Shown here one piece after another: positions 1,216-59,357 of a stretch of DNA of 64,000 nucleotides; the stretch's first letter is position 1, and the number at the start of each line of letters is the position of its first letter. Source of the stretch: Vitrella brassicaformis CCMP3155. Taxonomy: Eukaryota; Protista; Chromerida. Position numbers and translations under genes: made by a program. The DNA lies in assembly GCA_001179505.1 (NCBI GenBank), contig CDMY01000613.1, positions 62,001 through 126,000 of the forward strand, given 5' to 3'. A model generated the notes under the pieces. That model worked only from the letters and a program-made list of their open reading frames with translations. It was not told where the DNA came from and searched no databases.

Positions 1216-4200
1216 ATGGATCACGCCATGGACGACGTGCCGGAGGGCGGGGCAGCTGCGGCTGCATCACCAGCCCCAGCACCCTTCGACATCCGCCAAG
1301 GCGCCGTGCCAAAGGATGGATGCCCTCATGTGTTTGTGGGATCTGGCGCTCCCAAGGATGCAGACTGCGCTGAGGTGCCCCTTGACATCGGCAAATATGG
1401 CATTCATCCAAGGGTCGTCGCCGGATACCACAGGAAAGGTACAAGCCAAGCGAGGCACACACAGACAGATGCATATGGGTGAATGTGTGTGTCCACGTTC
1501 TGACCTGACGTGTGTGCAGGTCTGAAGCGTCTGTATCGGTGGCAGGCTGAGTGCCTGTGTGTGCCCGGAGTGTGCGATGGCCACAACCTCATCTACTCAG
1601 CACCGACAAGCGGCGGTATGCGAATGCCAGCCACACAGACCACACCGAGAGGGAACATCTCATCTCACACCGCCGCCATCTTGGCTGCGCTGCGTTCAGG
1701 CAAGACCCTCGTGAGTGAGGTTCTGCTCTTCCGGCACCTGTCCGGCGGAGCCTCCTCATTCACCACTGCCAAGATGGTGATGGTCGTCCTGCCCTTCGTG
1801 TCGGTGGTGTCTGAGAAGGAGCAGCAGCTCAAGCGCGTGGTGCCGTCAGATCTTTACTCCATCCAGGGATTCTATCACGGGTCGGCTCACAAGCTGGGCG
1901 ACTCGCTGCTGTCGACCGACCCCACCGACCGGCAGAGGACGGACATCGCCGTGTGCACGATAGAGAAGGCCAACGGCATCGTCGACTTCATGCTCAGCAA
2001 GGACGGCGACGCCAGTGTGGCGGGAGAGGGGGAGGGGGCCGGCCGCGTGCTGAGAGGCCGGGTGGGCGTGGTGGTCATTGACGAGATACACATGCTGAGC
2101 GAGGCCATGAGGGGCTACCTGCTGGAAGTGCTCCTCACCAAGATCCAGCACTTCGGCAAGGTACAGCGTCCATCCCATCCACGGAAAGGGAGGGGGAAGG
2201 CCCACATACATTGGAAATATCTGTCCGTCTGTGAATGCGCTGCAGGGCAAGATCCAGGTGGTCGGCATGTCGGCGACCCTCCCCAACGCCATCGAGATCG
2301 GCTCATGGCTCAGCGCCAAGGTCTACCTCTGCACCTACCGACCCGTACCGCTCCACGAGTACATCTCATGCCAGTCACGCATCACACACAAGCCTGATGC
2401 AGCGGCAGCGGCAGCGGCGGCAGCCGGTGGGGCCGCACCTGTCTGGACGGACGTGACGGCATCGGTGCTGCCCTTCCCCCTTCCTGCCTTCCTGGAGCAG
2501 GGGTGTGTCCTGGAGGCCATTCGCGTCGTCGAACCCTCGTGGTTTGTGCGACGGACAATGATACCCACATACACATACACAGACATCCTGACTGGCCTCA
2601 CAAGTGTCCGTCCGTGTTGGTGTGTTTTGCCTGCAGGTGTTGGCTGAATCGCAGCACTGACAGCAGCAGCGACAAGGCCAGGGGCAACGTGTGCATGGCG
2701 CATGACGTGTGTGTGGCGGCGCTGTGCCCCGTGCTGGAGGGCCACAGCGTGCTGGTCTTCTGCCCCACCAAAAGGGACGTGGAGATGACGGCACAGGTGC
2801 TGGGGGCCCTGCTGCCAGACAAGCCCAGAGGCGCCGCCACAGATGCGGACAGACAGATGGGTGGGCATCCACGTGACGATAGCTATGGATGTAGAGCGAG
2901 ATGGGAAATCTGCCTTTCCTCTCTGTGCGTTGGTTGGTTGGTTGATTGGCTGATTGGATATATCAGCGTTCCGTCGCAACATGTTGCTGCTGCAGTTGTC
3001 GCAGTGTCCCAACGGCCTCGATCCCGTCCTAAAGCAGAGCGTGCCCAAGAGTGTGGGCTACCACCACGCCGGCCTCACCGTGGAGGAGAGACGAGTCATC
3101 GAACAGGCTTACCGGTGCGTGGCTGTGCTCCTGACCAATCAATCAACCACATCAGCCAGCCACACCAACAGCCTTGGCTGTGCTGTGTGTGTCTTCAGCG
3201 ACGGCACTCTGTCATTGCTGACGGCCACGTCCACTTTGGCAGCAGGGGTCAACCTGCCCGCCCGTCGAGTTGTGTTCAAGTCGCCCTACATCGCCCGCGA
3301 CATGATGGACGCCGTCAAGTACCGCCAGATGGCCGGCCGGGCGGGTCGTGCGGGTCAGGGCAGTGTGGGGGAGGCCATAATGGTGTGCAAGCGGGAGGAC
3401 GAGAGGAAGGTCAAGGAAATCATGACCAGCGGCATGGACAGACTCAACAGCACCTTCACCAAGAACTCCGTCGGGCTGCAGCGCCTCTTTCTGGTGAGAC
3501 AGGGGAGAGGGGAGAGCGGATGATACGGCTGCATGGCATGAACAGAGGAGATGTGTGTGTGTGTGTGTGTGTGTGTGTAGGAGGTGTTGTCGACCACAGA
3601 AGGGTTCGGCACCAACCAGGACCTGATTGGCCTGACCCGTGCGACCCTCCTCTACGCTCAGAAGGACTCCAGCGCCCAACATGATACCAACACGGTGAGT
3701 GACTGCCTGCCTTCTCCAGAACAACCTGTGTGTGTGTGCATCAACCAACGTGCTCACACACACTTACACACACGTGTCTGTTTGCTGTTTGTTGGACTGG
3801 CCGATGCATGCAGACGATGGAAGCTGCCCGCACAGCCTTCCCAGAGACCAACGAAGCCGTCACAGAGCTCGAAAAGCACGGTAGGTCGCATACACACACG
3901 AATGAATGGGCAGAGCAGAGCAGCCATGTGGACGTACGTGTTTGGTTGGATGCATCCGTGAGTGGGTGCAGGTCAGATGCGCTACAACCGTCAGCTGGAC
4001 CGGTACGAGGCCACCGCCCTGGGCAAGGCCGGCTGCCGCGCCGGCCTCACGCCCGAGGAGGGGTTCCTCATCTACCTGGACCTCGACAGAGCAAAGGAGG
4101 CACTCGTAAGTATATATCCCTGTGTCAACACACCACCCCATACACCCATTGCATGCACCAGGGCCGTCTCTGTGTTGTCACGTTCTAATAATCAGGTGCA

Positions 4201-7200
4201 GACGGCTGATTTGTGGGTGCTGTACCTGGTGTCGCCTCTGGCGTCGCCCCTCCGTGCGAATCAGATCCAGTGGGGGACATATGTCGACATGCTCGTGCAG
4301 TTCCAGGAGCCAACCGCCTCCATGATCCGCAAGATCGGCATACACATCGACTACGTCGACGGCGTCAGGCAAAAGGCGAGAAGAGGGAGAGGAGAGAGAG
4401 GGGGGCATGGCAGCCATGCGTCGCATCCTGATGGCCTGGTGTTGTGTGTGTATGTGTGTGTGTGTTTGGGGTACAGAAAGGTCAGCTGCCTCCGCATGAG
4501 CTGAATGGGACGGACTACAGGCGCCACGCACGATTCTACGCCACACTCATCCTATGGTGCGCGCGAACACAACACAACACAACACATAGGTGTATGTGTG
4601 TGCTCCCTCCCCATTCATTGACGGTGCGGTGCCTGTGTGAGCAGGTTCCTGCTTCGCGGTAGTCCCTTGAGCGATCTGGAGGAGGTCTTCTCGCTAAGCA
4701 AAGGCGAGATACAAAGCATACACTCACAGGCCATACTACTCGCCGGACGAGTATCNNNNNNNNNNNNNNNNNNNNNNNNNNNNNNNNNNNNNNNNNNNNN
4801 NNNNNNNNNNNNNNNNNNNNNNNNNNNNNNNNNNNNNNNNNNNNNNNNNNNNNNNNNNNNNNNNNNNNNNNNNNNNNNNNNNNNNNNNNNNNNNNNNNNN
4901 NNNNNNNNNNNNNNNNNNNNNNNNNNNNNNNNNNNNNNNNNNNNNNNNNNNNNNNNNNNNNNNNNNNNNNNNNNNNNNNNNNNNNNNNNNNNNNNNNNNN
5001 NNNNNNNNNNNNNNNNNNNNNNNNNNNNNNNNNNNNNNNNNNNNNNNNNNNNNNNACACACACACACATACACACCCACCAGCGCGTGTTGATCCCATCC
5101 CACTTTGTGCTCGCTAAGTGACACGTTGGGACTGCACTTCCTGGGTGCGTTGGTGCGCGAGATGGGCGACCGCATCTTCTACCTCAACAAGAAGGAGCTG
5201 GAGCCGCTGCTCCACATACCCGGCGTCACACAAACACAGGCCAGGTGAGTGCACGTGGCTGAGCAGTGATTGAGTGCAAGGATGCATTCATGGCCATACG
5301 TCCATCTCCCTCTCCGTCTGTGTGTCTGTCTCTGATGCAGAATCTTGTTCCAGTTGGGCTTCAAGGACCCCGTGTCACTGGCCAAGGCCAAGCCCGCCCT
5401 GCTGAGCCAGGCCATCCGCCAGACCTTCAAGAACAGGCAGCAGAAGGAGTTCGGCTTCCTGCGACACGGCCAGGGGCAAGAGGGGGACGATAGCGGCGAG
5501 ACGTTCGATTGGGTGCTGAAGGTGGCCAAGGAGCTGGTGGCGGCCGCACAGGCCATGACCATCGTCAAGGCCAACAAGGATGGACGAGAGGCGCACGAGT
5601 ACGTCAAGAAGCACCAGCAGCAGCAGCAGCAGCAGCGGCCGAGCACCAATGGGCGCGACCAGCACCAGAGCCAGCACCAGCAGCGGGAGCAGGGGCAGGG
5701 ACAGGGTGAGGGTGAGGCGGGTGGTGGTGACCCCATGGCGATCGACACAGACGAGGATGACCAACAGGTGGGTGGCCCCTCCCTCCCTCCCTCCCTCCCT
5801 TCCTACCACTACACATTCGCACGCGTCTCTCTTTCTGTGAATGTTCACTCAGCACGGCCTGGCGTTTCTTGAGGAGGGCACGGACGATGACGACGCGATG
5901 GTGCTCGTTGGCGGCACCGGCACCGACCCATCCCCCTCTGCCCCCTTATCTGGGGCGCCCCCGCCGCCCCACCGCCGACTCGTCGAGGCCCCTCCACAGC
6001 CCACGGCCTTCGCTGTCGACACCGACGATATGTCCGACTTGGCGGCACTCATTGACGACGTCGAGAAAGAGGGCGTCGACAAGGGCGTCCCGCCAGAGGT
6101 GCTCCTGTACGACTCCGCCGAGCAAGACCAGCAGCAGGAGGAGGATGACACGACGACAGGCGACGGCCAAGAGGGTGGTGGTGATGGTGCCGACGGACAG
6201 GGCGGCGTGGGGGTGCTGGTCAACACGACTGACCACCTGGGCGCCGCCGACCTTCAGGCCTTCCAGCGACACTTCGCAACGGCTCTCAGAGGACGGGCAG
6301 CAGCCAACCACCCCAGGAAGCGGGCATCATCGGCCCACAGCAATGCTGCGTCAGACGCCATGGCGATCGAGCCCGAAGCGTTCCATGCCAGGTGCACCCC
6401 CTCCCCGCCCCTCCGCCCTTCCCCACCGCCGCGCCGCGCAGCGACAGTTGCTGTTGCTGCTGCTCCTCGGAAGCGACAGAGAATGGACCAGCATGAGGAG
6501 GAGGGAAATGGAGATTGGCAAGAGGGTGGAGACGTACCGAGCAGCGCCGTGTCTGATGAGATGATGGAGCTTGATCTGGATGTGGGCCACCGGCCGAAGA
6601 CTGAGGGGGCGGCGATGGGGATGAGGGGCAGGCAGGGGCACGGGGTGGAGGAGGAGCTCTCGATTACCTTCACGGTGCCGAGAGGAAGCAGAGAGGCTGT
6701 CTGGGCCGCTCTCAGACGGGTGAGGGGAACAAGAGCACACCCACACCATGCAGCAGGCAGAGGACCCGCATTCATTCCCTTGTTCTGTGTGCGCCATGCG
6801 ATGGATGCAGCTGGGCCGCCTCAACATGACTGACGAGGACGAGTGGGCCGTGCACGAGCACCAGAAGGCCCTGACGGCCCCAGCAAGCCTCACACGCCAA
6901 GATTCTCCCCTCCTCTCACCCACAGAAGCCAACCACCACCACAACCAGCAGCACCAGCAGCAGCAGCAGCCGCCCGACATCGGTGCCGACTCCCCCATGC
7001 AGACGTCCCCCGCCATGCCGCGAGCAAGAGAAGAGAGTGGCCACGGCAGCACACAGAACGGCAGCAGCGGTTTGTTCGACTGGCTCATGCCCCCGCCAAG
7101 ACGAGGGCATGATGACGTGGATATGGCCGAGGAGGTGGTGCCGTCGCTCAGAGGCCTGCAAGACCTGTGTGGTGGCGAGGTGATCGAGGGCGATGACCGG

Positions 7201-9611
7201 TCGGTGCTCATGAGGGTGCCGCGGGAGCTCACCGAGCCCATCCTCATTGACGTGGTGCCGCAGGACATCGACAGCAGTGAGGAGGAGTGGCGGTACTTCA
7301 ATGACGTCCTTCCGATCGCCCAGGGGTACCTCGAGCAAGCCCTGCAGGGGTCCTCCCTCATCGCAATCAGCATCGTCTACACCCTCAACATGCAGACACC
7401 GGCAGCAGCAGCAGCAGCAGCAGCAGCCCCCCAGGGATCAAGCCCCCTCATCCCCATCAAGGTGGCCCTCACGTGTCCCGCCTTCGGCACATTCATCCTC
7501 TTCATCCCCTCTCCACCTGTATCCTCACCCTGGTCCATGGGGGGCTCGGGTCTGCCGGCGTGTCTGCTGGCCTGGCTGCAGGAGCCGTCACACGTGGTGG
7601 TGGCGGAGGACGGCAAGGACTTCCTCAAGTACCTCCACATGCACGGCTGGCAAGCGAAATGCGCGTTTCGCGACGTCAAAGTCGCCGACTGGCTGCTCGA
7701 CCCGGACGACTCACAGGCCATCGAGTACAACGACCAGCTCACGGAGCGATACGCCATCCGCGTGGAGAAGACTGACGGCGGCGGCCGACAGCCGGTTTCT
7801 CGGCCGCCAATGGGCAGCTTCCCCCGTCGGCTGGCCAACGCGTGTCTGCAGCCGATAGTGGAGAGCCAGTGGGAGCTGCTGGTGCTGATGGCAAGGCTGG
7901 GGGAGGAGCTGCGGCAGACGGCGGAGGGGGGCGGGCTGTGGCGTGTGTACCGGCATCTCGAGATGAGGTGCATGTGTGTGGTGGCGGCCATGGAGAGCGT
8001 CGGGCTGGCCGTCCACCCCACGTGGCTCAACACACAGCACCAGATCGAATTCCAGCTGCGGAATATAGAGGTGGGTGCGAGGGAGAAAGCCATCAGCCAT
8101 CCCCCAATACATGTATGCACACACCTGCCTGTCTGTGTGTGTGTCTATAGCGTTGGAGCGAGTCGAAGTTTCGGCGCTACGTGAACCTCCAGTCGGCTGA
8201 GGACACCGGCGCGGCCCTCTTCCGCGACCTCCAGCTGCCCGTCCCCGACGGCGTCACCTTCAGACGCAAGCCGAACGGCAACATCAGATACCGATCCGGC
8301 ATGGTGTGCATGGCATGACCCAAACGGACGGACAGCACTGCAGGGCGGGCTCATATCATTCGTGTGGTGTATGTGTGTGTGTGTCAGGACATCTTGAATG
8401 CGATCAGGAACCCGCCGCCGATAGTGGAGCTGATCCAGGGGTACAGGAAGCTCATCGACCTACAGCGCAAGTCACAGACCATCGCCACATTCGCCACATA
8501 CGTCGACCCACCACCACCAGGACGGCCGAGGACCTCCACATTCGGCCTCGACCCCCTGTGCTCATCATGCGTGATGCAGCTGCTGCAGGCGGAGGACCAG
8601 CCGATTGGTCGCGACCTGGGCGAGTGGCCGCCCAAGTTCATGAGACCTCGCGTCAAGTGAGTCAGACACACGAGGGATGGCAAGACACATCCTTGCATGT
8701 GTGTGTGCATGTGTGTATTGGTGTGTGTGTGTGTCAGGTCTCACTTCAACATGACCGGGACAGCCACGGGTCGTTTCTCGTCGCATGAGCCCAACCTCTT
8801 CGTGGTGGACAACCCGCACCTGATCTACCTCCCCAAGCTCCCCAGCATCCACAAAGACATGGCTGCCATCACCAGACACCCACACCTGCACCCCGCCCTC
8901 ACACACAGACTCCACCCCTTCATCGGCCTCTCACACGCGGCACCGCCACTCGCCCCACAGCTCTTCGACGCATCAATGGCCTTCTTCCGCAGCATCCTGG
9001 CTTCCACGCAGGGCACTGGCAGTGGAGATGGGGTGGTGCCGGGTGCTGCCGCTGCCGCTGGTGGCGGCACCAACACCAACGGCGAGCAAGATGATGGTGG
9101 TCATCCGAACAAGACTGTCGGTGATCGCTATGAGTGGGTGTTTGTGCAGCGGGCGGACCAACCTCCCCCGGGGGACGAGCCCGAGGACAGCCAGACGGTG
9201 GAGGTGGACTTCAGCCGCATGTTCCACAAGGGCGTGCTGCACTCGATCCTGCTCGACAAGTCGGTCATGGACCCCTATGGGGCAGCAGGGGCCAAGGGGG
9301 ACCAGGCCAAGCCGCTCGTTGACTACTGGCGCGAGAAGGGGCACCACTACTCTGACGAAGACGCCAAAGTAGTGAGGCAGGTCAGAAGAGCACCACACAC
9401 GGCCCCTCTGTCGGCTGTCTCTTTGACGTATGTCCCTATCTCTTTTGTCCAGGTGCGTGTCCGTCTGCACCGGCCGGACGGCCCCCTGCTGACCTACCCG
9501 GCCAACAAGGTGTACCGATGCACATCAGAGGTGCCGCCGCCTACCCCGCCCCAAGCCACACCCCCACAGCCACCAGCCCTGCCGCCCGCTGCATCCGCTG
9601 GGTCGCCACAG

Positions 9612-9643
<32 letters not shown>

Positions 9644-11062
9644 GCGAGCTCCGCCAAAGGTGCTTGTCAGCAACGTGACCTTGCGTGACATGTTTCGGTG
9701 TGAGGACGGCTGGACCCTCCTGACTGTCGACTACTCACAGATAGAGGTGAGACGGACAGACGGGGGAAGATGGCGTGTGATGTGGTTGGTGGTGGATTGT
9801 GGCCGTGTCGGGCTGCGCTGTTGTGCTGTGTGCACTCGTGTGCAGTTTCGGCTGTTTTGTCACTTTAGCGGTGATCCCATGCTGCTGCGGGCATTCAACG
9901 AGGGCAAAGACCCATTCACGACCATCGCAGCCGAGATATTCGAGAAGGTGCCCATCCACCCACCACACACAAACCCGTTTCCTGGCGTCCATCTGTCTGT
10001 CTGTCTGCCTGCATGTCTGTGTGTGTTGTCAGAGTGACTCGTGTGTGACGGGCCAGGAGCGCGCGAGTGCCAAGAGGCTGTGCTATGCGCTGCTGTACGG
10101 CATGAGCGCCAGGGGTCTGGCCAGGCAGCTCGACATGGACGTCAGGGATGCACCTGACTTCATCAAACGATTCCACCAGCGATTCCCGGTACGTGCATCC
10201 ATCCATCCATCCATCCATCAGTCCTTCCTCTGTCTCCGTGTGCATCACCATGCGACTGACTGTGCAGGGGGCACGGTCGTTGCTGGAGCGGTGCCGCGAC
10301 AAGGTCCGTCGCCATGGCTACGTGGAGACGCTGCTCGGTAGACGGAGATACCTACCGGGACTCAAGAGCAGGTCAGACAGCGCGGGAATGAGCAAGGGCA
10401 TCCACGCAACACACAAGGAGAGAGATGTGCACGTGTGTGTGTGTGTCTGTGTGTGTCGATGGGCGGCTGGCAGCGACTGGGCTGAGCGCAGCAAGGCGGA
10501 GCGGCAGGCCATCAACACACTGTGCCAGGTACGCAGAAAGGGATGCAAAAGACTCACACACATACCCCCTCTCCACTTGTCTGCCTGCCTCCCTCCCTCT
10601 TTGGCTGCAGGCGTCTGGTGCGGACATCATCAAGTGTGCCATGGTGGCCGTCACCGACGCCCTCGACCAACAAACAGACCCCCCCACCCACCGATCGAAA
10701 TACCCACACACACCGCCCAAGACGTCACCTGCAGCATCGCCCGCAGCAGCAGCAGCAGCAGCATCGGCCGCATCGGGGGGCCAGTGGGTTGGTAGTGCGT
10801 GTGAGTGCGACCGTTCTGTGCGTCTGGTGCTGCAGCTGCACGACGAACTGCTGTTCGAAGTCAGGGACGACGTGCTCGACCATGTCAGGTCAGTCTGAGA
10901 AGCGCTTGTGTGGTGCATGCAACACCATGTGTATGCGGTGTGTGCGTGCGCGTTGGTGTGTGCAGTTCAGTGGTGGTGTCAGTGATGGAGCGTGTGGTTC
11001 GGCTGAAGGTGCCGCTGAAGGTCAGGTGCAAGACCGGCAAGACCTGGGGATCACTCAAGTGA
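1216..11062 (+). CDS. POLQ: DNA polymerase theta: N-terminal Ski2-like SF2 helicase, low-complexity linker, exonuclease-like domain, family A polymerase; many introns; spans a gap
   Basis: Spliced motifs: LYRWQAECL, NLIYSAPTSGGKTL (Walker A), VVVIDEIHML (DExH), VGYHHAGLTVEER, TSTLAAGVNLPARRV, YRQMAGRAGR; DVKVADWLLDPDD; TGTATGRFSSHEPN; PolA motif A TVDYSQIE, motif B RASAKRLCYALLYG, RQAINTLCQASGAD, motif C LQLHDELLFEV; ends VRCKTGKTWGSLK-TGA at 11062. Confidence 0.95.
4756..5055. other. Assembly gap (300 N) inside POLQ
   Basis: Run of 300 N. Confidence 0.99.
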
Positions 11063-20111: not shown

Positions 20112-22290
20112 ATCTAGAGGCAGGCAAGGCAAGGCAGACGACGGCAAGGCAGACGACGGCGAGGCTGGGTTGGCTGAGCAGGTGGCTGAGTGGGTTTCTT
20201 CCTCCTTCCTTTTCCTGTGATTGGTCGATTTTGTCCGCGTGTTGGGAGGGAGGGAGGGAGGGAGGGAGTGAGGGAGGTGTCCATGCGTACGATGCATACA
20301 CGGCATGCCACACCATTCATCCATCCAATCACACCACACTCCTGCCCTGCCCTGCTCTCATTTTTCCGTCCGTGCGTCCATCCATTCGTCCATGCATCCA
20401 CCCGTTCTTCTATAATACAGAGTGACTGATTGAGTGAGCGATTGAGCGATAGAGTGAGTGAGATGAGCGACCAATGAATGAATGCCTAAAGAGAGGGCAT
20501 ATGTACCATCATGCATGCGAATGTGTCTGTCTGTATCATGTGGATCGATCGACGAACCTCGCCTGTGTCTGTATGTATCAATACCTCTGCCAGCCTGACT
20601 GCCTGGATGGATGCACTCCTGCCTTGCCTTCCTCTAGTCTTTCTTCTCTCTCGACACACACATGACATGAATAAGTGAATGGATGGCTGAAACGAATTTG
20701 GCTCTCTCTGCTGCGTTGTCCGCTCTCCCCTGCCTGCCTGCCTGCCTCTTCACACTGACCGCTCTTCCTCTCATTTCCTTTCATCAGCACAACACTCGTT
20801 GTCTGTTTCCGTTTGCCCATCTGTGTGTGGTGTGGTGTGTATGGGGAACGAGAGACGCTCTACTGAGCAGCCGGGGAGCCAGAGAGAGAGAGACACACAG
20901 AGAGAGAGAGAGAGGGAGGAACAAAGGCAAGCAACACGAGAGATGAGGATCTTTTTCCGTGCCTGCCTGCCTGCTTGTCTGTCTTGTCTACGTCGACCCA
21001 TACGTCCATGCGTGTAGCTTTAGTGCCCATTGCATTGCCACCCTGCCAAACGTGTGGCGATACGGTTGCTTCTGTCTGTCAGCCCTGCATTCTTCTCTCG
21101 CCGTCCGGGCTGCGGCCCGATTGCCTGTGGCTCGCCAGTCTGCGAGATACGGACAATTGAGCCGACCCACGGTTGGCGAGAGGAGAATGCAGAAGGTGAC
21201 AACTCACGCCGGGCAGACTAGAGACATGCTGCCTGCCTGCCTGCCTGCCTGACATGCGCTGCCTGCGTCACAGGAATGATTTTTCGACTTGCCGCGCCAC
21301 CCGCCACACGTCTGTCTGAGGTCACACATCAACACGCTCCGTCGCACACGACTGCTGAACGGATGGACCCACCGCGCACACATACACACATACATGCATA
21401 CTTACATACATACTTGATGCCCTGCTGTTGTATAGAGAAGGGGAGGGGTGGGAGGGAGGGTGGATGTGGGTGCTCGGAGGAAGCAAAAGGAAGGGCCCAT
21501 CACGCAGACGGGAGCGATCGACTCTACTGATTGTAGAGTAAAGGAGGGAACTTCACATGCCGCCTTGCCTCGCCTCGCCTCGCCTCACCTCGACTAGCTG
21601 CCTTGTCTGTCTACCTGCCTGTCTGCTGCAGCAGGGTGCCTGCCGTGTGGGTGACTGCTGGTTAGTTGGATGTATGTATGTGTGTGGCAGGGAGGGTCGG
21701 TGGGGCGGGTGGGTGGTTGGTGAGTGGCCCCTGCTTGCAGCGAGCGCAGCGCAGCGCGGTGACGATTGCCTTGCCTGCGTGCCTGACAATGAAGAAATGC
21801 GTGCTGCATCGATGCATCCAGAGGGATGAGTTTTGAGAGGAGAGAGCGACTGAGTGAGTGAGATGGATGACTCGACTGATGGACGGATGGACGACTGACT
21901 GGTGTGATTGATCCACAACCACACATGCATGGGTGCACATCACATGCACGAGGGAGGGCGGGAGGGAGGGAGGGACCTGCCTCACTGCCTGCCTGCCTGT
22001 GTGCATGTGTCTAGATGTGTGTGCGTGTTGTCGCTGTCTGTGTGTGCGTCTGTCTGTGTTGGTTGTGTTGCCAGCCATCGTGTACACGAACCTTCGAGTG
22101 AGTGATTACAGGAAGACGGGGACGGACGCGTTAGTGAGTGAGTGCTGCCTATCAAATATACTACATGTACGTGTCTTCATGCACACAGTCAACAACAAAA
22201 CATATATATGCCTCACATCAAGATAAAGACCATCACGCCACACCGACACCAACCGCACAAAAGATCGACGTCATTGACAGCCTCTCACAT

Positions 22291-22990
22291 CTACGCCCCC
22301 TTGATCCTCAGAAGCTCCTCTTTCTTGTCCTTGACCAATGCCTCCAGCATGTCAATCTCCGCCTGCAGAGCGTCCGCCCTCTCGTAATAGACGCCCTTCT
22401 CAGTAATCACGGGATAAATGCCCTTCTCATTGTGCACCTCCCGGCCGTCACAGGGCGGTGTGAACACACAGACCAGTTTGCAGCCGTCAGGGCCGGCGGT
22501 CACCGAGTGTCTGTCGTGCTGGTCAAGCAGGTAGGCCTCCCCCGCACCAAGGGCGTGTGCCTCGCCGGTCTGCTTGTCAGTCACTGTGCATGAGCCGCTG
22601 TAGATGAGGCAGGCTTCGATGTGGTTGGCGTAGCTGCAGCCATCCATCCATCCATCCATCCATCATTCGGTCGGCACAATGAATGATCCATCTCCATGTG
22701 CTGCAGCCGAGCCGGCCGCCTGTGTTGGCTGGCTGCTCACTTACTGTATGTTGGTCTGCGTGTTGGGCGCCACGTGAGTGTCATGCAGCGAAAAGCTCGT
22801 CCCGTCCTGATCATATATCCATGAGCCAGCCAGCAAGATCCAACTTTGTGTGCATCAGGCAGTCCAGTCAGTCGGTGAATGGAATGGCGTCTAGTCTTGC
22901 CTTTCGGACGAAGTATCGTCGGCTTTCCCAGTTGGGGCCTTTCGCCCACAGGCCGAGGTCACCCAACTCAGACAACCGGCGGATCTTCAT
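22291..22990 (-). CDS. ectC: L-ectoine synthase (cupin), 3 exons: 22990-22901, 22806-22745, 22633-22291
   Basis: Spliced product MKIRRLSELGDLGLWAKGPNWESRRYFVRK|DGTSFSLHDTHVAPNTQTNI(H)|YANHIEACLIYSGSCTVTDKQTGEAHALGAGEAYLLDQHDRHSVTAGPDGCKLVCVFTPPCDGREVHNEKGIYP... Contains the EctC signatures WESRR, FSxH, HYxNHxEA, YxLDxHDRH, CVFxPPxxGREVH. Both splices keep the frame. Confidence 0.93.
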
Positions 22991-23103
22991 CACATCACCG
23001 GTCGGCAGATCTGCAGCCACTCCAACAGCTGCAGAAGTGTGAACGACTGAGGAGGTGTTCCCAAAAGAACCAATATATTGGCTGTACCACCTGTATGATG
23101 CTT

Positions 23104-23191
23104 GGTCTCTTAGTGTAGTGGAAACACTCTGGACTTTGACCGTGCCGCCGGATGCCATCCAGCAACCTCGGTTCGAACCCGAGAGAGACTG
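23104..23191 (+). tRNA. tRNA-Gln (anticodon TTG) with a 17-nt intron at the canonical 37/38 position (23140-23156)
   Basis: Hand-folded cloverleaf: acceptor GGTCTCT/AGAGACT, D-arm GTGT-AGTGGAA-ACAC, anticodon stem CTGGA/TCCAG with loop CT-TTG-A[intron]A, variable CAAC, T-arm CTCGG-TTCGAAC-CCGAG; a TTTT run about 45 nt downstream. Confidence 0.88.
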
Positions 23192-24233
23192 TTACGTCGC
23201 TGAAGCCTTACTGTGGTGTTCTCAGTGTTTTCTGCTGTTTGTGAGTCTCTCAGGCCTCACACACATGTTAATTGGCTCTGCGAGCCCTCGTTGCCACCAG
23301 CGACATCGTCTCACAAGAACGAACATATGCCAATGTCCGTCCCTCTGCCCTTTGCTGTACATGACGTGGGCAGACAGACAGAGATCACCCACCGCATCAG
23401 GCAGGCAGGCAAGGCAAACCATGCTGCATGCAGGACGCACCATACCATCCACCCTACTAGTTGCTAGTGTCAGCCAGCCAGCCAGCCATTCACACGCAGA
23501 CAGACAGACAGGGCCAGTGGCAGAGAGGTAGAGGTAATGTGGTGAGCGTCAGAACAGCTAGCTAGCGCGTATGTGTTCGTTCGGCAAAGTGCTAGCAGAC
23601 AAATCAGGTTTGCAATCTCCCCCGCTCCCTGCCTTGCCTGCCTCCAGCCAGTTAGTTATCCTGACCTATCTACCTACTCCTGTGCCCTGTACAAGTTGAC
23701 CTCTAGTCGATCAGTGAGTGACCCACCTTCTCTCTAGCTCAGAGAGCATTTCACGACCACTGCATGAAGGCAGTCAGTACACACCCGTCCTTTCCCCCCC
23801 AACGCACACGCCATTCGTCACGCACATCGATGGTTCGTACGTTCCACACGGAAAATTGCTCCATCATGCTCACTCACCCGATATATGTCCATCCAGCTGA
23901 GCTGTCCATCCCATAAGCCGACATGGACATATATCGAAAAACCGAAAAAGCGGCGCGACGCTGCCTCCCGCCTCTGTCTGTTATCGGGTCCCGCCTTTCC
24001 TCACCGATCGAACGAACGCACACCTATGTACACCTACACACGCCTCTCTCCCCTCCCCTTCCCTCCCCTCCCCGCCCTCCCTGTATGTCCGTCCATACCG
24101 TCAAGATGTCAAAATCGCCGCCCCGGGAGAGAGCTCTCTCACAGACAGAAGAGGAAACCACTTCCCTCCCTCTCCCCCCTCTCTGTCGGCCTGTCTGTCT
24201 TTGCTGCCGGGAGGTCAGTCAGTGATCAGTGAG

Positions 24234-57244: not shown

Positions 57245-58933
57245 TCAGTCAATGCCCAGCGACACAAACAGGCCAGTCTGCCTGTCGATGTGCCCCAGCT
57301 GTTGCCATGCGAATTGGCAGTCCTGGTCGCCCAGATGCTCGTTGAAGCCCTTGACCACACCCACCACACCATGGCTGGCCGCCTCGTCCAGCCGCGCCTT
57401 GTGCACCACCTCACGCAGCCCCAGACGGCCGGCCGTGTGCACCACATGAGGCGGACGGCTGTCGGCCCCATCAGAGACGGCGAAGCACTGCAGCGGCACG
57501 CGCACCATCACGCCGCCCAGACTGCCCGTCACGCCCACCACCTCCCTGTTGCTGCTCGCATGCAGCGCCGACTTGACGAAGTGGGTGACAGCCGCACGCA
57601 CACGCCGAAAGAGGCGGCTGTTGCGTAGGGGGATGCTCTCGTCGATGGCCGCCATGGCCGCGTCGATGTCGAAGAGGTATGATGCGATGCGCCAGGCGAA
57701 GACTGGCGCCTCCTGCGGGCCGACGGCCAGCCGGGGGGTCAGCAGGGCCGCGAGTGAGCGCTGGGGGGCGAGGGCGGTGTTGATGGCCGACATGACGGCC
57801 TCGGACAGCTCATTCAGCACTGTCGCATACTCGGCCAGCACCCTCCGTTGACAACGACGGTGCTGCACCTCGGTTGCGGTGGGCATGCGGGCGATGGATG
57901 GGACCGCCCCGCCCCGCAGCAGCACACGGATGACGGTCCTCTGCTCGTCGATCCGGTCTGCCTCCCGTCGCTGGACGACCTCGTCGAGCGTCCTGGCAGC
58001 CTCTGCTAGGGGTGTCAGGTTGGCCCGGTTCGGCCTCCCTCTGTTGACGTCGTCGGCTGTCAGCTGGCGGCACAGCCAATGAGCCACACAGGGAGAGCCG
58101 TATCCGGCCGCCTCGTGCAGTGGCGTGCGGCCGAAGTTATCTGTTGCCGTCATGTTGACCCTGCGGCTGGTGATGAGGGTGAGGTACTCGTCCATGAAGA
58201 GCTGGGAGAAGGCAGTGTGTGTGGCAAAGTGCCTGGATGCCTCATGCACCAGATTCTCTCCGCCAACGGACCGCTCGGCTGCGAGGGTGCTGTCGTGTTG
58301 GATGAGGCGACGGAAGACCGACATGAGGGCCGCCTCGTACTGGCAACTGACGGGGCGGGCAGCGTAAGGGATGTAGGGAGGCCTCATTACCCTGACTCCT
58401 CGCACGTTGGCCTGGCGCGACAGGAGGGCCTCCACAGCCGTCAGATTGCCCGCACGAATCGCCATCTTGATGGGCCTATCCGTCGACCCCTCCGTCAGAT
58501 TGGGGTCCGCATTGACGTCCGCCCCTCCGTCGACGAGTGCATTGATGATGTCACGCTGTAGCTGACGGGAGGACCACTGCGGCAGGACGACGGGCACCTC
58601 CTTTGGGTAATCATCGCCGCGCGCATAGAGGGATGGGATGTTTGTTGGGCTGTCGATGGCGAAAGACAGGCAGCTGTATCGACGGCCAGCGGTGCCTGCG
58701 GTGCCACGGACGCGCAGGCCGCCGGTGGCTCTCGGGTCGGCTCCTTGCTGGATCAGCGACGTGACATAGGAGGCCTCAGTGAAGCTGCGCCGAATGCAGC
58801 CCTCCAACAGCTGCCCACTGACAGTCGTGACTCCCTCATCGGGCAGGAAATCGACGTCGTCCAGCCCCTTGCAGCCGGGCGACGGGGCGGCAGCATGAGG
58901 TGCTTGCGACGAGGCAGACGACGGCTGGGCCAT
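57245..58933 (-). CDS. Ankyrin-repeat protein, single exon, lineage-expanded type
   Basis: Uninterrupted ORF of about 562 aa; ankyrin motifs ALVDGGADVN, PIKMAIRAGNLTAVEALL, GRTPLHEAAGYGS, TPLAEAA. Confidence 0.88.
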   Translation of the reverse strand: MAQPSSASSQAPHAAAPSPGCKGLDDVDFLPDEGVTTVSGQLLEGCIRRSFTEASYVTSLIQQGADPRATGGLRVRGTAGTAGRRYSCLSFAIDSPTNIPSLYARGDDYPKEVPVVLPQWSSRQLQRDIINALVDGGADVNADPNLTEGSTDRPIKMAIRAGNLTAVEALLSRQANVRGVRVMRPPYIPYAARPVSCQYEAALMSVFRRLIQHDSTLAAERSVGGENLVHEASRHFATHTAFSQLFMDEYLTLITSRRVNMTATDNFGRTPLHEAAGYGSPCVAHWLCRQLTADDVNRGRPNRANLTPLAEAARTLDEVVQRREADRIDEQRTVIRVLLRGGAVPSIARMPTATEVQHRRCQRRVLAEYATVLNELSEAVMSAINTALAPQRSLAALLTPRLAVGPQEAPVFAWRIASYLFDIDAAMAAIDESIPLRNSRLFRRVRAAVTHFVKSALHASSNREVVGVTGSLGGVMVRVPLQCFAVSDGADSRPPHVVHTAGRLGLREVVHKARLDEAASHGVVGVVKGFNEHLGDQDCQFAWQQLGHIDRQTGLFVSLGID

Positions 58934-59357
58934 CACGCAGAGTCACACACACCTGCATACACAGACACAGACACACACAGTCTCTTATTCATCATTCCCT
59001 CCCTCTTAAGGTGCTGACGCACCTCTCTCCTGGTCGGTCAGTCGACGGCCGCCGATCACTCAGACAGACAGCAATGCCATCAGTCGGCCCTGCATGCGTC
59101 ACAGAAAGCAGAGTCACCCACGTGCTTGTCCATCGTCGGAATCTGCCCGCGTGTGCCTCGCCTCAGCCTGCGGTATGTGCAAGTGATCGCATTCAACAAA
59201 ACAGGCCCGGCCGATGCCCTCGTGGTAACGCATTTGCGTGCTGTAGCGATGCTCAGGGGGCGCGCGAGCTGCGGAGGAAAAAGGAAACGTGAAACGGATG
59301 GGCCGGAAGGCCCTTCCTTCCCTCCCCTCTCTCGTCGCGTGAAGTGTACTTAAAGTG

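Follow-up and report, generated by a model that had tools for sequence, protein, structure and literature searches.

A Spliced Nuclear Gene of the Ectoine Synthase Family in the Chromerid Alga Vitrella brassicaformis

Introduction

Vitrella brassicaformis is a free-living photosynthetic alga of coral reefs, a chromerid related to the apicomplexan (malaria) parasites. In a 64-kb stretch of its genome (64,000 nucleotides, hereafter the window), a first-pass annotation placed an intron-containing gene for ectoine synthase, ectC. Two questions follow, namely whether the gene truly belongs to the alga, and whether its product makes ectoine there.

The same annotation described the ectoine pathway as reported in only a few protists, such as Halocafeteria. 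The Halocafeteria case stands, but the eukaryotic distribution is wider than this wording allows: EctA/EctC have been reported in amoebozoans, dinoflagellates, a cryptomonad, stramenopiles, oomycetes, a choanoflagellate, and two deuterostomes, a list from which Vitrella is absent (Harding et al., 2016, PMC4987115). Intron-bearing protist ect genes were described in that study, and Czech and Bremer (2018, PMC5796728) later drew attention to them. Measurements have detected ectoine itself in diatoms, haptophytes, and one dinoflagellate, and no EctC was found in Phaeodactylum (Fenizia et al., 2020, PMC7024275). Our search of the literature returned no paper linking chromerids with ectoine.

Many marine microalgae contain measured ectoine, and the Vitrella gene provides a handle on whether algae, beyond their bacteria, make the compound. 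The locus is verified and expressed, it places an ectC that appears catalytically intact in a phototrophic alveolate, and it enlarges the scattered distribution of ect genes among eukaryotes by one case. The finding is of modest value, as the gene had already been annotated automatically, intron-bearing eukaryotic ect genes have been known since 2016, and the EctA/EctB partners are putative.

Gene Model and Transcripts

Vitrella ectC is certainly a nuclear, intron-bearing, transcribed, and spliced gene of the EctC family. Its coding sequence lies on the minus strand at 22990..22291, exactly the span given by the first-pass annotation, and consists of three exons that amount to 495 nt when spliced and encode 164 amino acids. 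The spliced model is identical to GenBank CEM26274.1 and UniProt A0A0G4GAX2 (UniRef100_A0A0G4GAX2) from V. brassicaformis CCMP3155, so that public databases already hold the gene model, together with the automatic name “L-ectoine synthase.” This 164-residue entry falls into the same 90%-identity cluster as the transcript-derived protein. The GC content of the spliced coding sequence is 59% overall, with 78% at third codon positions, and that of the window is about 59%.

Exon 1 (22990..22901, minus strand) comprises 30 codons from the ATG (MKIRRL...NWESRRYFVRK), includes W21, S23, and R25, and carries no targeting extension. It is followed by intron 1 (22900..22807, minus strand; 94 nt, phase 0, GCAAGA...ATCAG), which is of the GC..AG type, its donor being GC rather than GT. 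Exon 2 (22806..22745, minus strand; 62 nt) encodes DGTSFSLHDTHVAPNTQTNI, which includes T40, plus two bases of the His51 codon, which is split CA/C by intron 2 (22744..22634, minus strand; 111 nt, GT..AG, phase 2, GTAAGT...TGCAG). Removal of intron 2 in the spliced model restores ...NIHYANHIEA..., as had been proposed. Exon 3 (22633..22291, minus strand) supplies the remaining cupin barrel, with Y52, E57, Y85, H93, C106, F108, and the lid motif PPxxGREVHxxxGxYP, as well as a C-terminal helix (residues 136–163, coded at 22297..22380, minus strand), and ends with the TAG stop at 22293..22291 (minus strand).

Splicing is documented by RNA-derived contigs. A JGI transcript contig (L001; sample 3300017148, Ga0186167_110498) shows 100% identity to the window over 22902–22745, then jumps to 22633 and continues down to 21462. 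It therefore lacks intron 2, retains intron 1, and defines a 3′ UTR (21462..22290, minus strand) of at least 829 nt with many short tandem repeats. Its first base lies only two bases ahead of the exon 1/intron 1 boundary (bases 1–95 correspond to 22902–22807), and a transcript that retains intron 1 is predicted to meet a stop 11 codons into the intron. We also compared public sequencing runs over 21300–23090. Two small runs, X7 and X8, which we guess to be RNA and which belong to one study but are labeled with two differently named organisms, each yielded one contig (830 and 838 nt) covering 22011–22630, 22745–22805, and 22900–23005 or 22900–23027. In both contigs one joint skips 94 nt, and a shift of one base, inside the stated ambiguity, turns this gap into a GC..AG intron on the minus strand; at the other joint, exactly three letters separate 22745 from 22630, corresponding to 22633–22631. 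Together, these fits indicate that both introns have been removed in the X7 and X8 contigs. In the DNA runs X1 and X4, contigs span 22677–23090 unbroken, which shows that introns are present in the DNA.

Hence a fully spliced ectC mRNA exists, and a form retaining intron 1 was assembled as well. Both spliceosomal introns that had been read from the genomic sequence are thus borne out, as are the spliced transcripts that the first-pass annotation had named as a check on the gene. The pattern in L001 suggests either that the weak GC donor is spliced inefficiently or that retention of intron 1 is regulated.

The 5′ UTR occupies 22991..23027 (minus strand), as far as the RNA contigs reach (ends at 23005 and 23027). 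This short leader contains a minimal ATG-TGA upstream ORF (22995..22990, minus strand) that shares one base with the ectC ATG (ATGTGATG), and this start-stop element may affect the initiation of ectC translation. A tRNA-Ser(UGA) gene lies in divergent orientation at 23103–23192 (plus strand), 113 nt upstream of the ectC start codon and about 76 nt past the furthest RNA contig end. The next in-frame ATG upstream, at 23158, falls inside this tRNA gene and past the ends of the RNA contigs.

Family Membership, Conserved Residues, and Predicted Fold

The full spliced protein matches the Pfam family PF06339 (Ectoine_synth) with 130.8 bits (E 4.7e-38, cutoff 27) over model positions 1–125 of 127, and NCBIfam NF009806 with 135.6 bits, against a cutoff of 128, over positions 1–128 of 130. 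Exon 3 alone still scores 83.5 bits against PF06339, and exon 2 alone gives a weak Pfam match to positions 27–50 of the EctC model. Among sequences in the PDB, the best match is EctC of Sphingopyxis alaskensis (E 2.5e-24), and EctC of Paenibacillus lautus is matched at about 6e-18. Residue 31 of the Vitrella protein and residue 31 of the S. alaskensis enzyme are aligned with each other; therefore exon 1 corresponds exactly to the bacterial N-terminus.

The residues expected of an ectoine synthase are present at their canonical positions. E57, Y85 (+28), and H93 (+8) align to the iron ligands of S. alaskensis EctC and correspond to Glu57, Tyr84/85, and His92/93 of the family, in the spacing that had been claimed, and the W-x-S-x-R motif was found as W21-E-S23-R-R25. 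Ligand contacts in EctC have been given as Trp21, Ser23, Arg25, Asn38, Thr40, Tyr52, and Phe106/107 (Czech et al., 2019, PMC6344544). By alignment to these contacts, the Vitrella protein keeps the substrate/product residues W21, S23, R25, T40, Y52, and F108; its position 38 is His, as in both the crystallized S. alaskensis EctC and Streptomyces EctC. Cys106 is retained, and Trp21 stands at the canonical position. In an alignment of 44 sequences, E57 and Y85 are invariant and H93 is nearly so (95%), and the Vitrella protein has the family residue at every invariant and nearly invariant column. It keeps 28 of the 35 columns conserved at 70% or more; the seven that have changed (K2, I3, S34, N45, I61, C66, and C112) include none that is catalytic.

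The predicted structure agrees with this assignment. An AlphaFold2 model of the protein has a mean pLDDT of 93.1, and in a Foldseek comparison with the PDB its eight highest-ranking matches are all EctC structures (5by5, 5bxx, 5onm, 5onn, and 5ono; E 3e-13 to 9e-12, TM by target 0.80–0.94), with an rmsd of 1.1–2.0 Å in seven of the eight and of 9.8 Å for the 5onn alignment. Generic cupins come next, at E 4e-08 or weaker, four to five orders of magnitude below EctC. A feature search of the ESM Atlas returned generic and phage cupins with scores of about 0.9 and was uninformative on function. As judged from the alignments, the spliced product is a full-length EctC-family cupin with all of its predicted iron- and ligand-binding residues in place.

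The two ends of the protein differ in character. It starts at the bacterial position 1, with neither an N-terminal extension nor a targeting peptide, and a cytosolic location is therefore likely. At the other end, residues 131–164 form a 34-residue extension with no counterpart in any aligned homolog, and a Pfam scan of the protein gave no match beyond residue 126. Most of this extension (residues 136–163, 28 residues) is modeled as a single long amphipathic helix, with pLDDT in this block of 77–96 and hydrophobic residues spaced by three to four positions in a heptad-like manner (L140, I144, L147, V151, L158, and I161). On this model, the lineage-specific tail helix probably serves self-association or contact with a partner.

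Relatives and Origin

Of 1.84 billion cluster representatives searched exhaustively with HMMER, 359 proteins were recovered at E ≤ 0.001. Below 1e-30 there was only the protein’s own cluster, and the next best matches were 46–48% identical. The cluster members with an organism name near the Vitrella protein are bacterial (Nitrosomonas, Streptomyces, Nitromaritima, and Mesorhizobium), and other close matches come from metagenome contigs. A word-index search with exon 3 recovered the gene’s own transcript-derived protein alone, which points to an absence of near relatives. A genome scan found 80 loci at 44–51% identity, nearly all in Actinomycetota, along with two Paenibacillus MAGs; the excess of Actinomycetota stems from a search pattern favoring that phylum and gives no evidence of a donor.

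In maximum-likelihood trees, Vitrella EctC falls within the large clade that holds the cluster-encoded EctCs (SH-aLRT 96 in the quick tree), apart from both a tandem double-EctC clade and a Mesorhizobium-type group. Phylogeny had been proposed as a way to find the donor lineage; it nests the protein in the main EctC clade and does not recover the donor. A metagenomic orphan (P0007) appeared as sister in the quick tree (SH-aLRT 94), but this pairing dissolved in the careful tree, which gave no supported sister of Vitrella EctC. The terminal branch is 1.7–1.9 substitutions per site long in the two trees, and with 130 alignment columns and a branch of 1.9 no donor lineage can therefore be named. 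Most likely, ectC goes back to an ancient acquisition from bacteria and has become fully domesticated since.

Genomic Neighborhood and Pathway Partners

The gene lies on a 313,719-bp contig (CDMY01000613.1, assembly GCA_001179505.1), and its neighbors within 10 kb encode a protein kinase, an RRM protein, a DAAF9-like protein, a C1 peptidase, and proteins lacking any domain match; no ectA, ectB, ectD, or ask is among the annotated genes in that interval. None of the four lies in the window either, as had been noted from the sequence, and for ectA, ectB, and ectD the absence holds under tblastn: queries with bacterial EctA, EctB, and EctD, translated from ectABCD loci, and with the domains of a eukaryotic EctA and of an EctD, gave only noise across the whole 64 kb, with a best E of 0.03. 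Beyond the window, an EctA profile search, a search with a single dinoflagellate EctA domain, and a scan of metagenome and transcriptome contigs listed matches that were bacterial or unlabeled, and this bacterial saturation makes them uninformative on Vitrella.

Most of the long ORFs around ectC are artefacts of high GC; in a Pfam scan of ten of them, the only matches were a fragment of DNA polymerase A and ankyrin repeats. The former, a long ORF at 8697–10037 (plus strand), matches DNA polymerase family A strongly over a short stretch (56 bits, 36 residues) and is probably an exon of a PolA-type polymerase gene; the ORF with ankyrin repeats lies at 57245–58936 (minus strand).

The genomic contexts of the tree neighbors of Vitrella EctC are mixed. 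One neighbor (P0053, in the same weakly supported group) belongs to a complete MarR-ectA-ectB-ectC cluster, two are orphans, one after an alpha/beta hydrolase gene and the other beside corrinoid methyltransferase genes, and two are in phage-like clusters. EctC-family cupins on phage-like contigs (P0121 and P0018, on L083 at 3712–6036 and L086 at 183–2441) are flanked by a PAPS-reductase/DUF3440 gene on one side and a ParB-N-like gene on the other, at a great distance from ect genes, on contigs that also carry AAA_24, DNA methylase, and DUF5906 genes. Many viral cupins near the EctC family also appeared in the Atlas search.

Does Vitrella Make Ectoine?

We consider it somewhat better than an even chance that Vitrella EctC is an active ectoine synthase fed by EctB- and EctA-type enzymes encoded at unlinked sites. 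The nuclear gene would then yield a cytosolic EctC-type enzyme whose substrate, N-gamma-acetyl-L-2,4-diaminobutyrate, would be supplied by enzymes resembling EctB and EctA from other loci of the Vitrella genome. Following the mechanism proposed for bacterial EctC (PMC6344544), iron held by Glu57, Tyr85, and His93 would polarize the acetamide carbonyl of the substrate, and Thr40 and His38 would hold the alpha-amino group, which would attack this carbonyl, with elimination of water to give ectoine. We favor an active synthase because the full predicted catalytic apparatus has been kept despite apparently extensive divergence, as seen in the long terminal branch, and because ectoine occurs in diverse marine algae (PMC7024275). 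Counting against a pathway-fed synthase are the absence of ect partners from the window and within 10 kb, the identity of only 43–49% to cluster-encoded EctCs and of about 38% to the P. lautus enzyme, and the orphan or phage nature of several of the nearest tree neighbors. The literature that we searched contains no enzymatic or metabolite data on ectoine in Vitrella.

The main competing explanation is that Vitrella lacks EctA and EctB and that its EctC-type enzyme acts on something other than self-made N-gamma-acetyl-diaminobutyrate. It might use a scavenged intermediate, run the reverse (hydrolytic) reaction on ectoine from reef bacteria, or cyclize a related substrate. That ectC stands alone in the window and among its 10-kb neighbors agrees with such a role, although this says little, as eukaryotic genes need no clustering. 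The value of about 38% for the P. lautus enzyme lies inside the 37–42% range of orphan EctC-type proteins and below the 49–90% of cluster-encoded ones (Czech et al., 2019, PMC6344544); the long branch, however, may reflect no more than fast evolution after the transfer. The relatives in non-ect contexts (alpha/beta hydrolase, corrinoid methyltransferase, and phage clusters) and the extra C-terminal helix, which is unique to the Vitrella protein, also fit an orphan, whereas the complete MarR-ectA-ectB-ectC cluster around P0053, the canonical Trp21, and the retained Cys106 argue against one. Orphans, too, mostly keep the ligand residues (PMC6344544), and residue conservation is therefore compatible with this explanation. 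We regard it as a serious possibility, though one that falls clearly short of even.

Two further explanations deny the gene a function or deny it to Vitrella. A decaying, non-catalytic relic of an old transfer, transcribed without enzymatic function, would accord with the very long terminal branch and with the assembled transcript that retains intron 1 and is predicted to terminate early. Yet the reading frame is intact through three exons, conservation extends to all metal and ligand residues as well as the lid motif, the fold prediction is confident, and two runs labeled as two differently named organisms each yielded assembled, fully spliced mRNA, so that we rate a relic as very improbable. 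Bacterial contamination or an assembly artefact would account for the closest homologs with organism-named cluster members all being bacterial, but it is refuted by the splicing evidence, with two introns present in the DNA and removed in the RNA, and we give it practically no weight. It is likewise at odds with the eukaryotic contig of 313 kb in which the gene is embedded, with the identity of at most 51% to bacterial sequences, and with a third-position GC of 78% and host-like repeats in introns. Among these repeats is a perfect (CCAT)6 in intron 2 at 22640–22664; tetranucleotide and other tandem repeats recur in the 3′ UTR, consistent with the repeats that the first-pass annotation had described. 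Its conclusion that ectC is a nuclear gene and not contamination is upheld by the introns spliced in RNA and by the eukaryotic neighbors.

To return to the active synthase, we tentatively propose, at somewhat less than even odds, a bolder statement: Vitrella makes ectoine itself, with a solitary cytosolic EctC bearing a coiled-coil-like tail and with unlinked EctA/EctB-type genes. Alternatively, a different cyclization or the use of bacterial ectoine may be the task to which the tailed EctC was recruited. If Vitrella does make ectoine, the gene would provide the first genetic basis for this in a chromerid, and reef holobionts would have a source of ectoine in an alga.

Comparison with Known Ectoine Synthases

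The crystallized bacterial EctCs (S. alaskensis 5BXX/5BY5; P. lautus 5ONM/5ONN/5ONO) align with residues 1–130 of the Vitrella protein position for position, with the same cupin fold, iron ligands, substrate/product residues, and C-terminal lid motif. Vitrella EctC differs from bacterial EctC in its identity of only 38–49%, in the two spliceosomal introns of its gene, in the lack of adjoining ectA/ectB, and in the 34-residue C-terminal extension.

Among eukaryotes, the ectABC-ask/ectD genes of Halocafeteria seosinensis provide a precedent for a bacterial-type ectC as a spliced nuclear gene of a protist, and there, too, introns served as proof against contamination (Harding et al., 2016, PMC4987115). 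The Halocafeteria genes, however, are clustered and have predicted mitochondrial presequences (PMC4987115), whereas the Vitrella gene is solitary and its product has no presequence.

Other proteins combine the EctC domain with further domains. We observed tandem double-EctC proteins (P0003, P0006, and P0029, about 275 aa) and fusions of EctC to a formyltransferase-like domain (P0060 and P0112, about 380 aa), a glyoxalase-like domain (P0040, 254 aa), and an EctD-type PhyH dioxygenase (P0028 and P0143, 405–425 aa). EctC-EctA fusions occur in Biecheleria cincta (P0076), Polarella glacialis (P0147), and Bicosoecida sp. (P0038). Dinoflagellates, like Vitrella, are myzozoan alveolates. The EctC-EctA fusions belong to the same family as Vitrella EctC and share with it the WESRRY motif in strand 2, but they have an N-terminal extension, an “EGQKEGEG”-type insertion, and, in fusion, an EctA domain that scores above the TIGR02406 cutoff, none of which is found in the Vitrella protein. 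An N-terminal extension is likewise seen in the eukaryotic homologs P0016 and P0038, in contrast to Vitrella EctC. The EctC-EctA fusions form their own clade (100/99), and Vitrella lies outside it in both trees, although joining the two was not rejected by the AU test (p 0.229).

The bacterial orphan EctC-type proteins (PMC5924519, PMC6344544) resemble Vitrella EctC in being encoded away from ectAB, in showing a similar divergence from the P. lautus enzyme, in largely keeping the ligand residues, and in having a putative function, with the reservation that “orphan” is defined genome-wide, while the Vitrella gene was compared within the window. Orphan EctCs often carry Ser at the position of Cys106 (PMC6344544), whereas the Vitrella protein keeps Cys106, with Trp21 unshifted.
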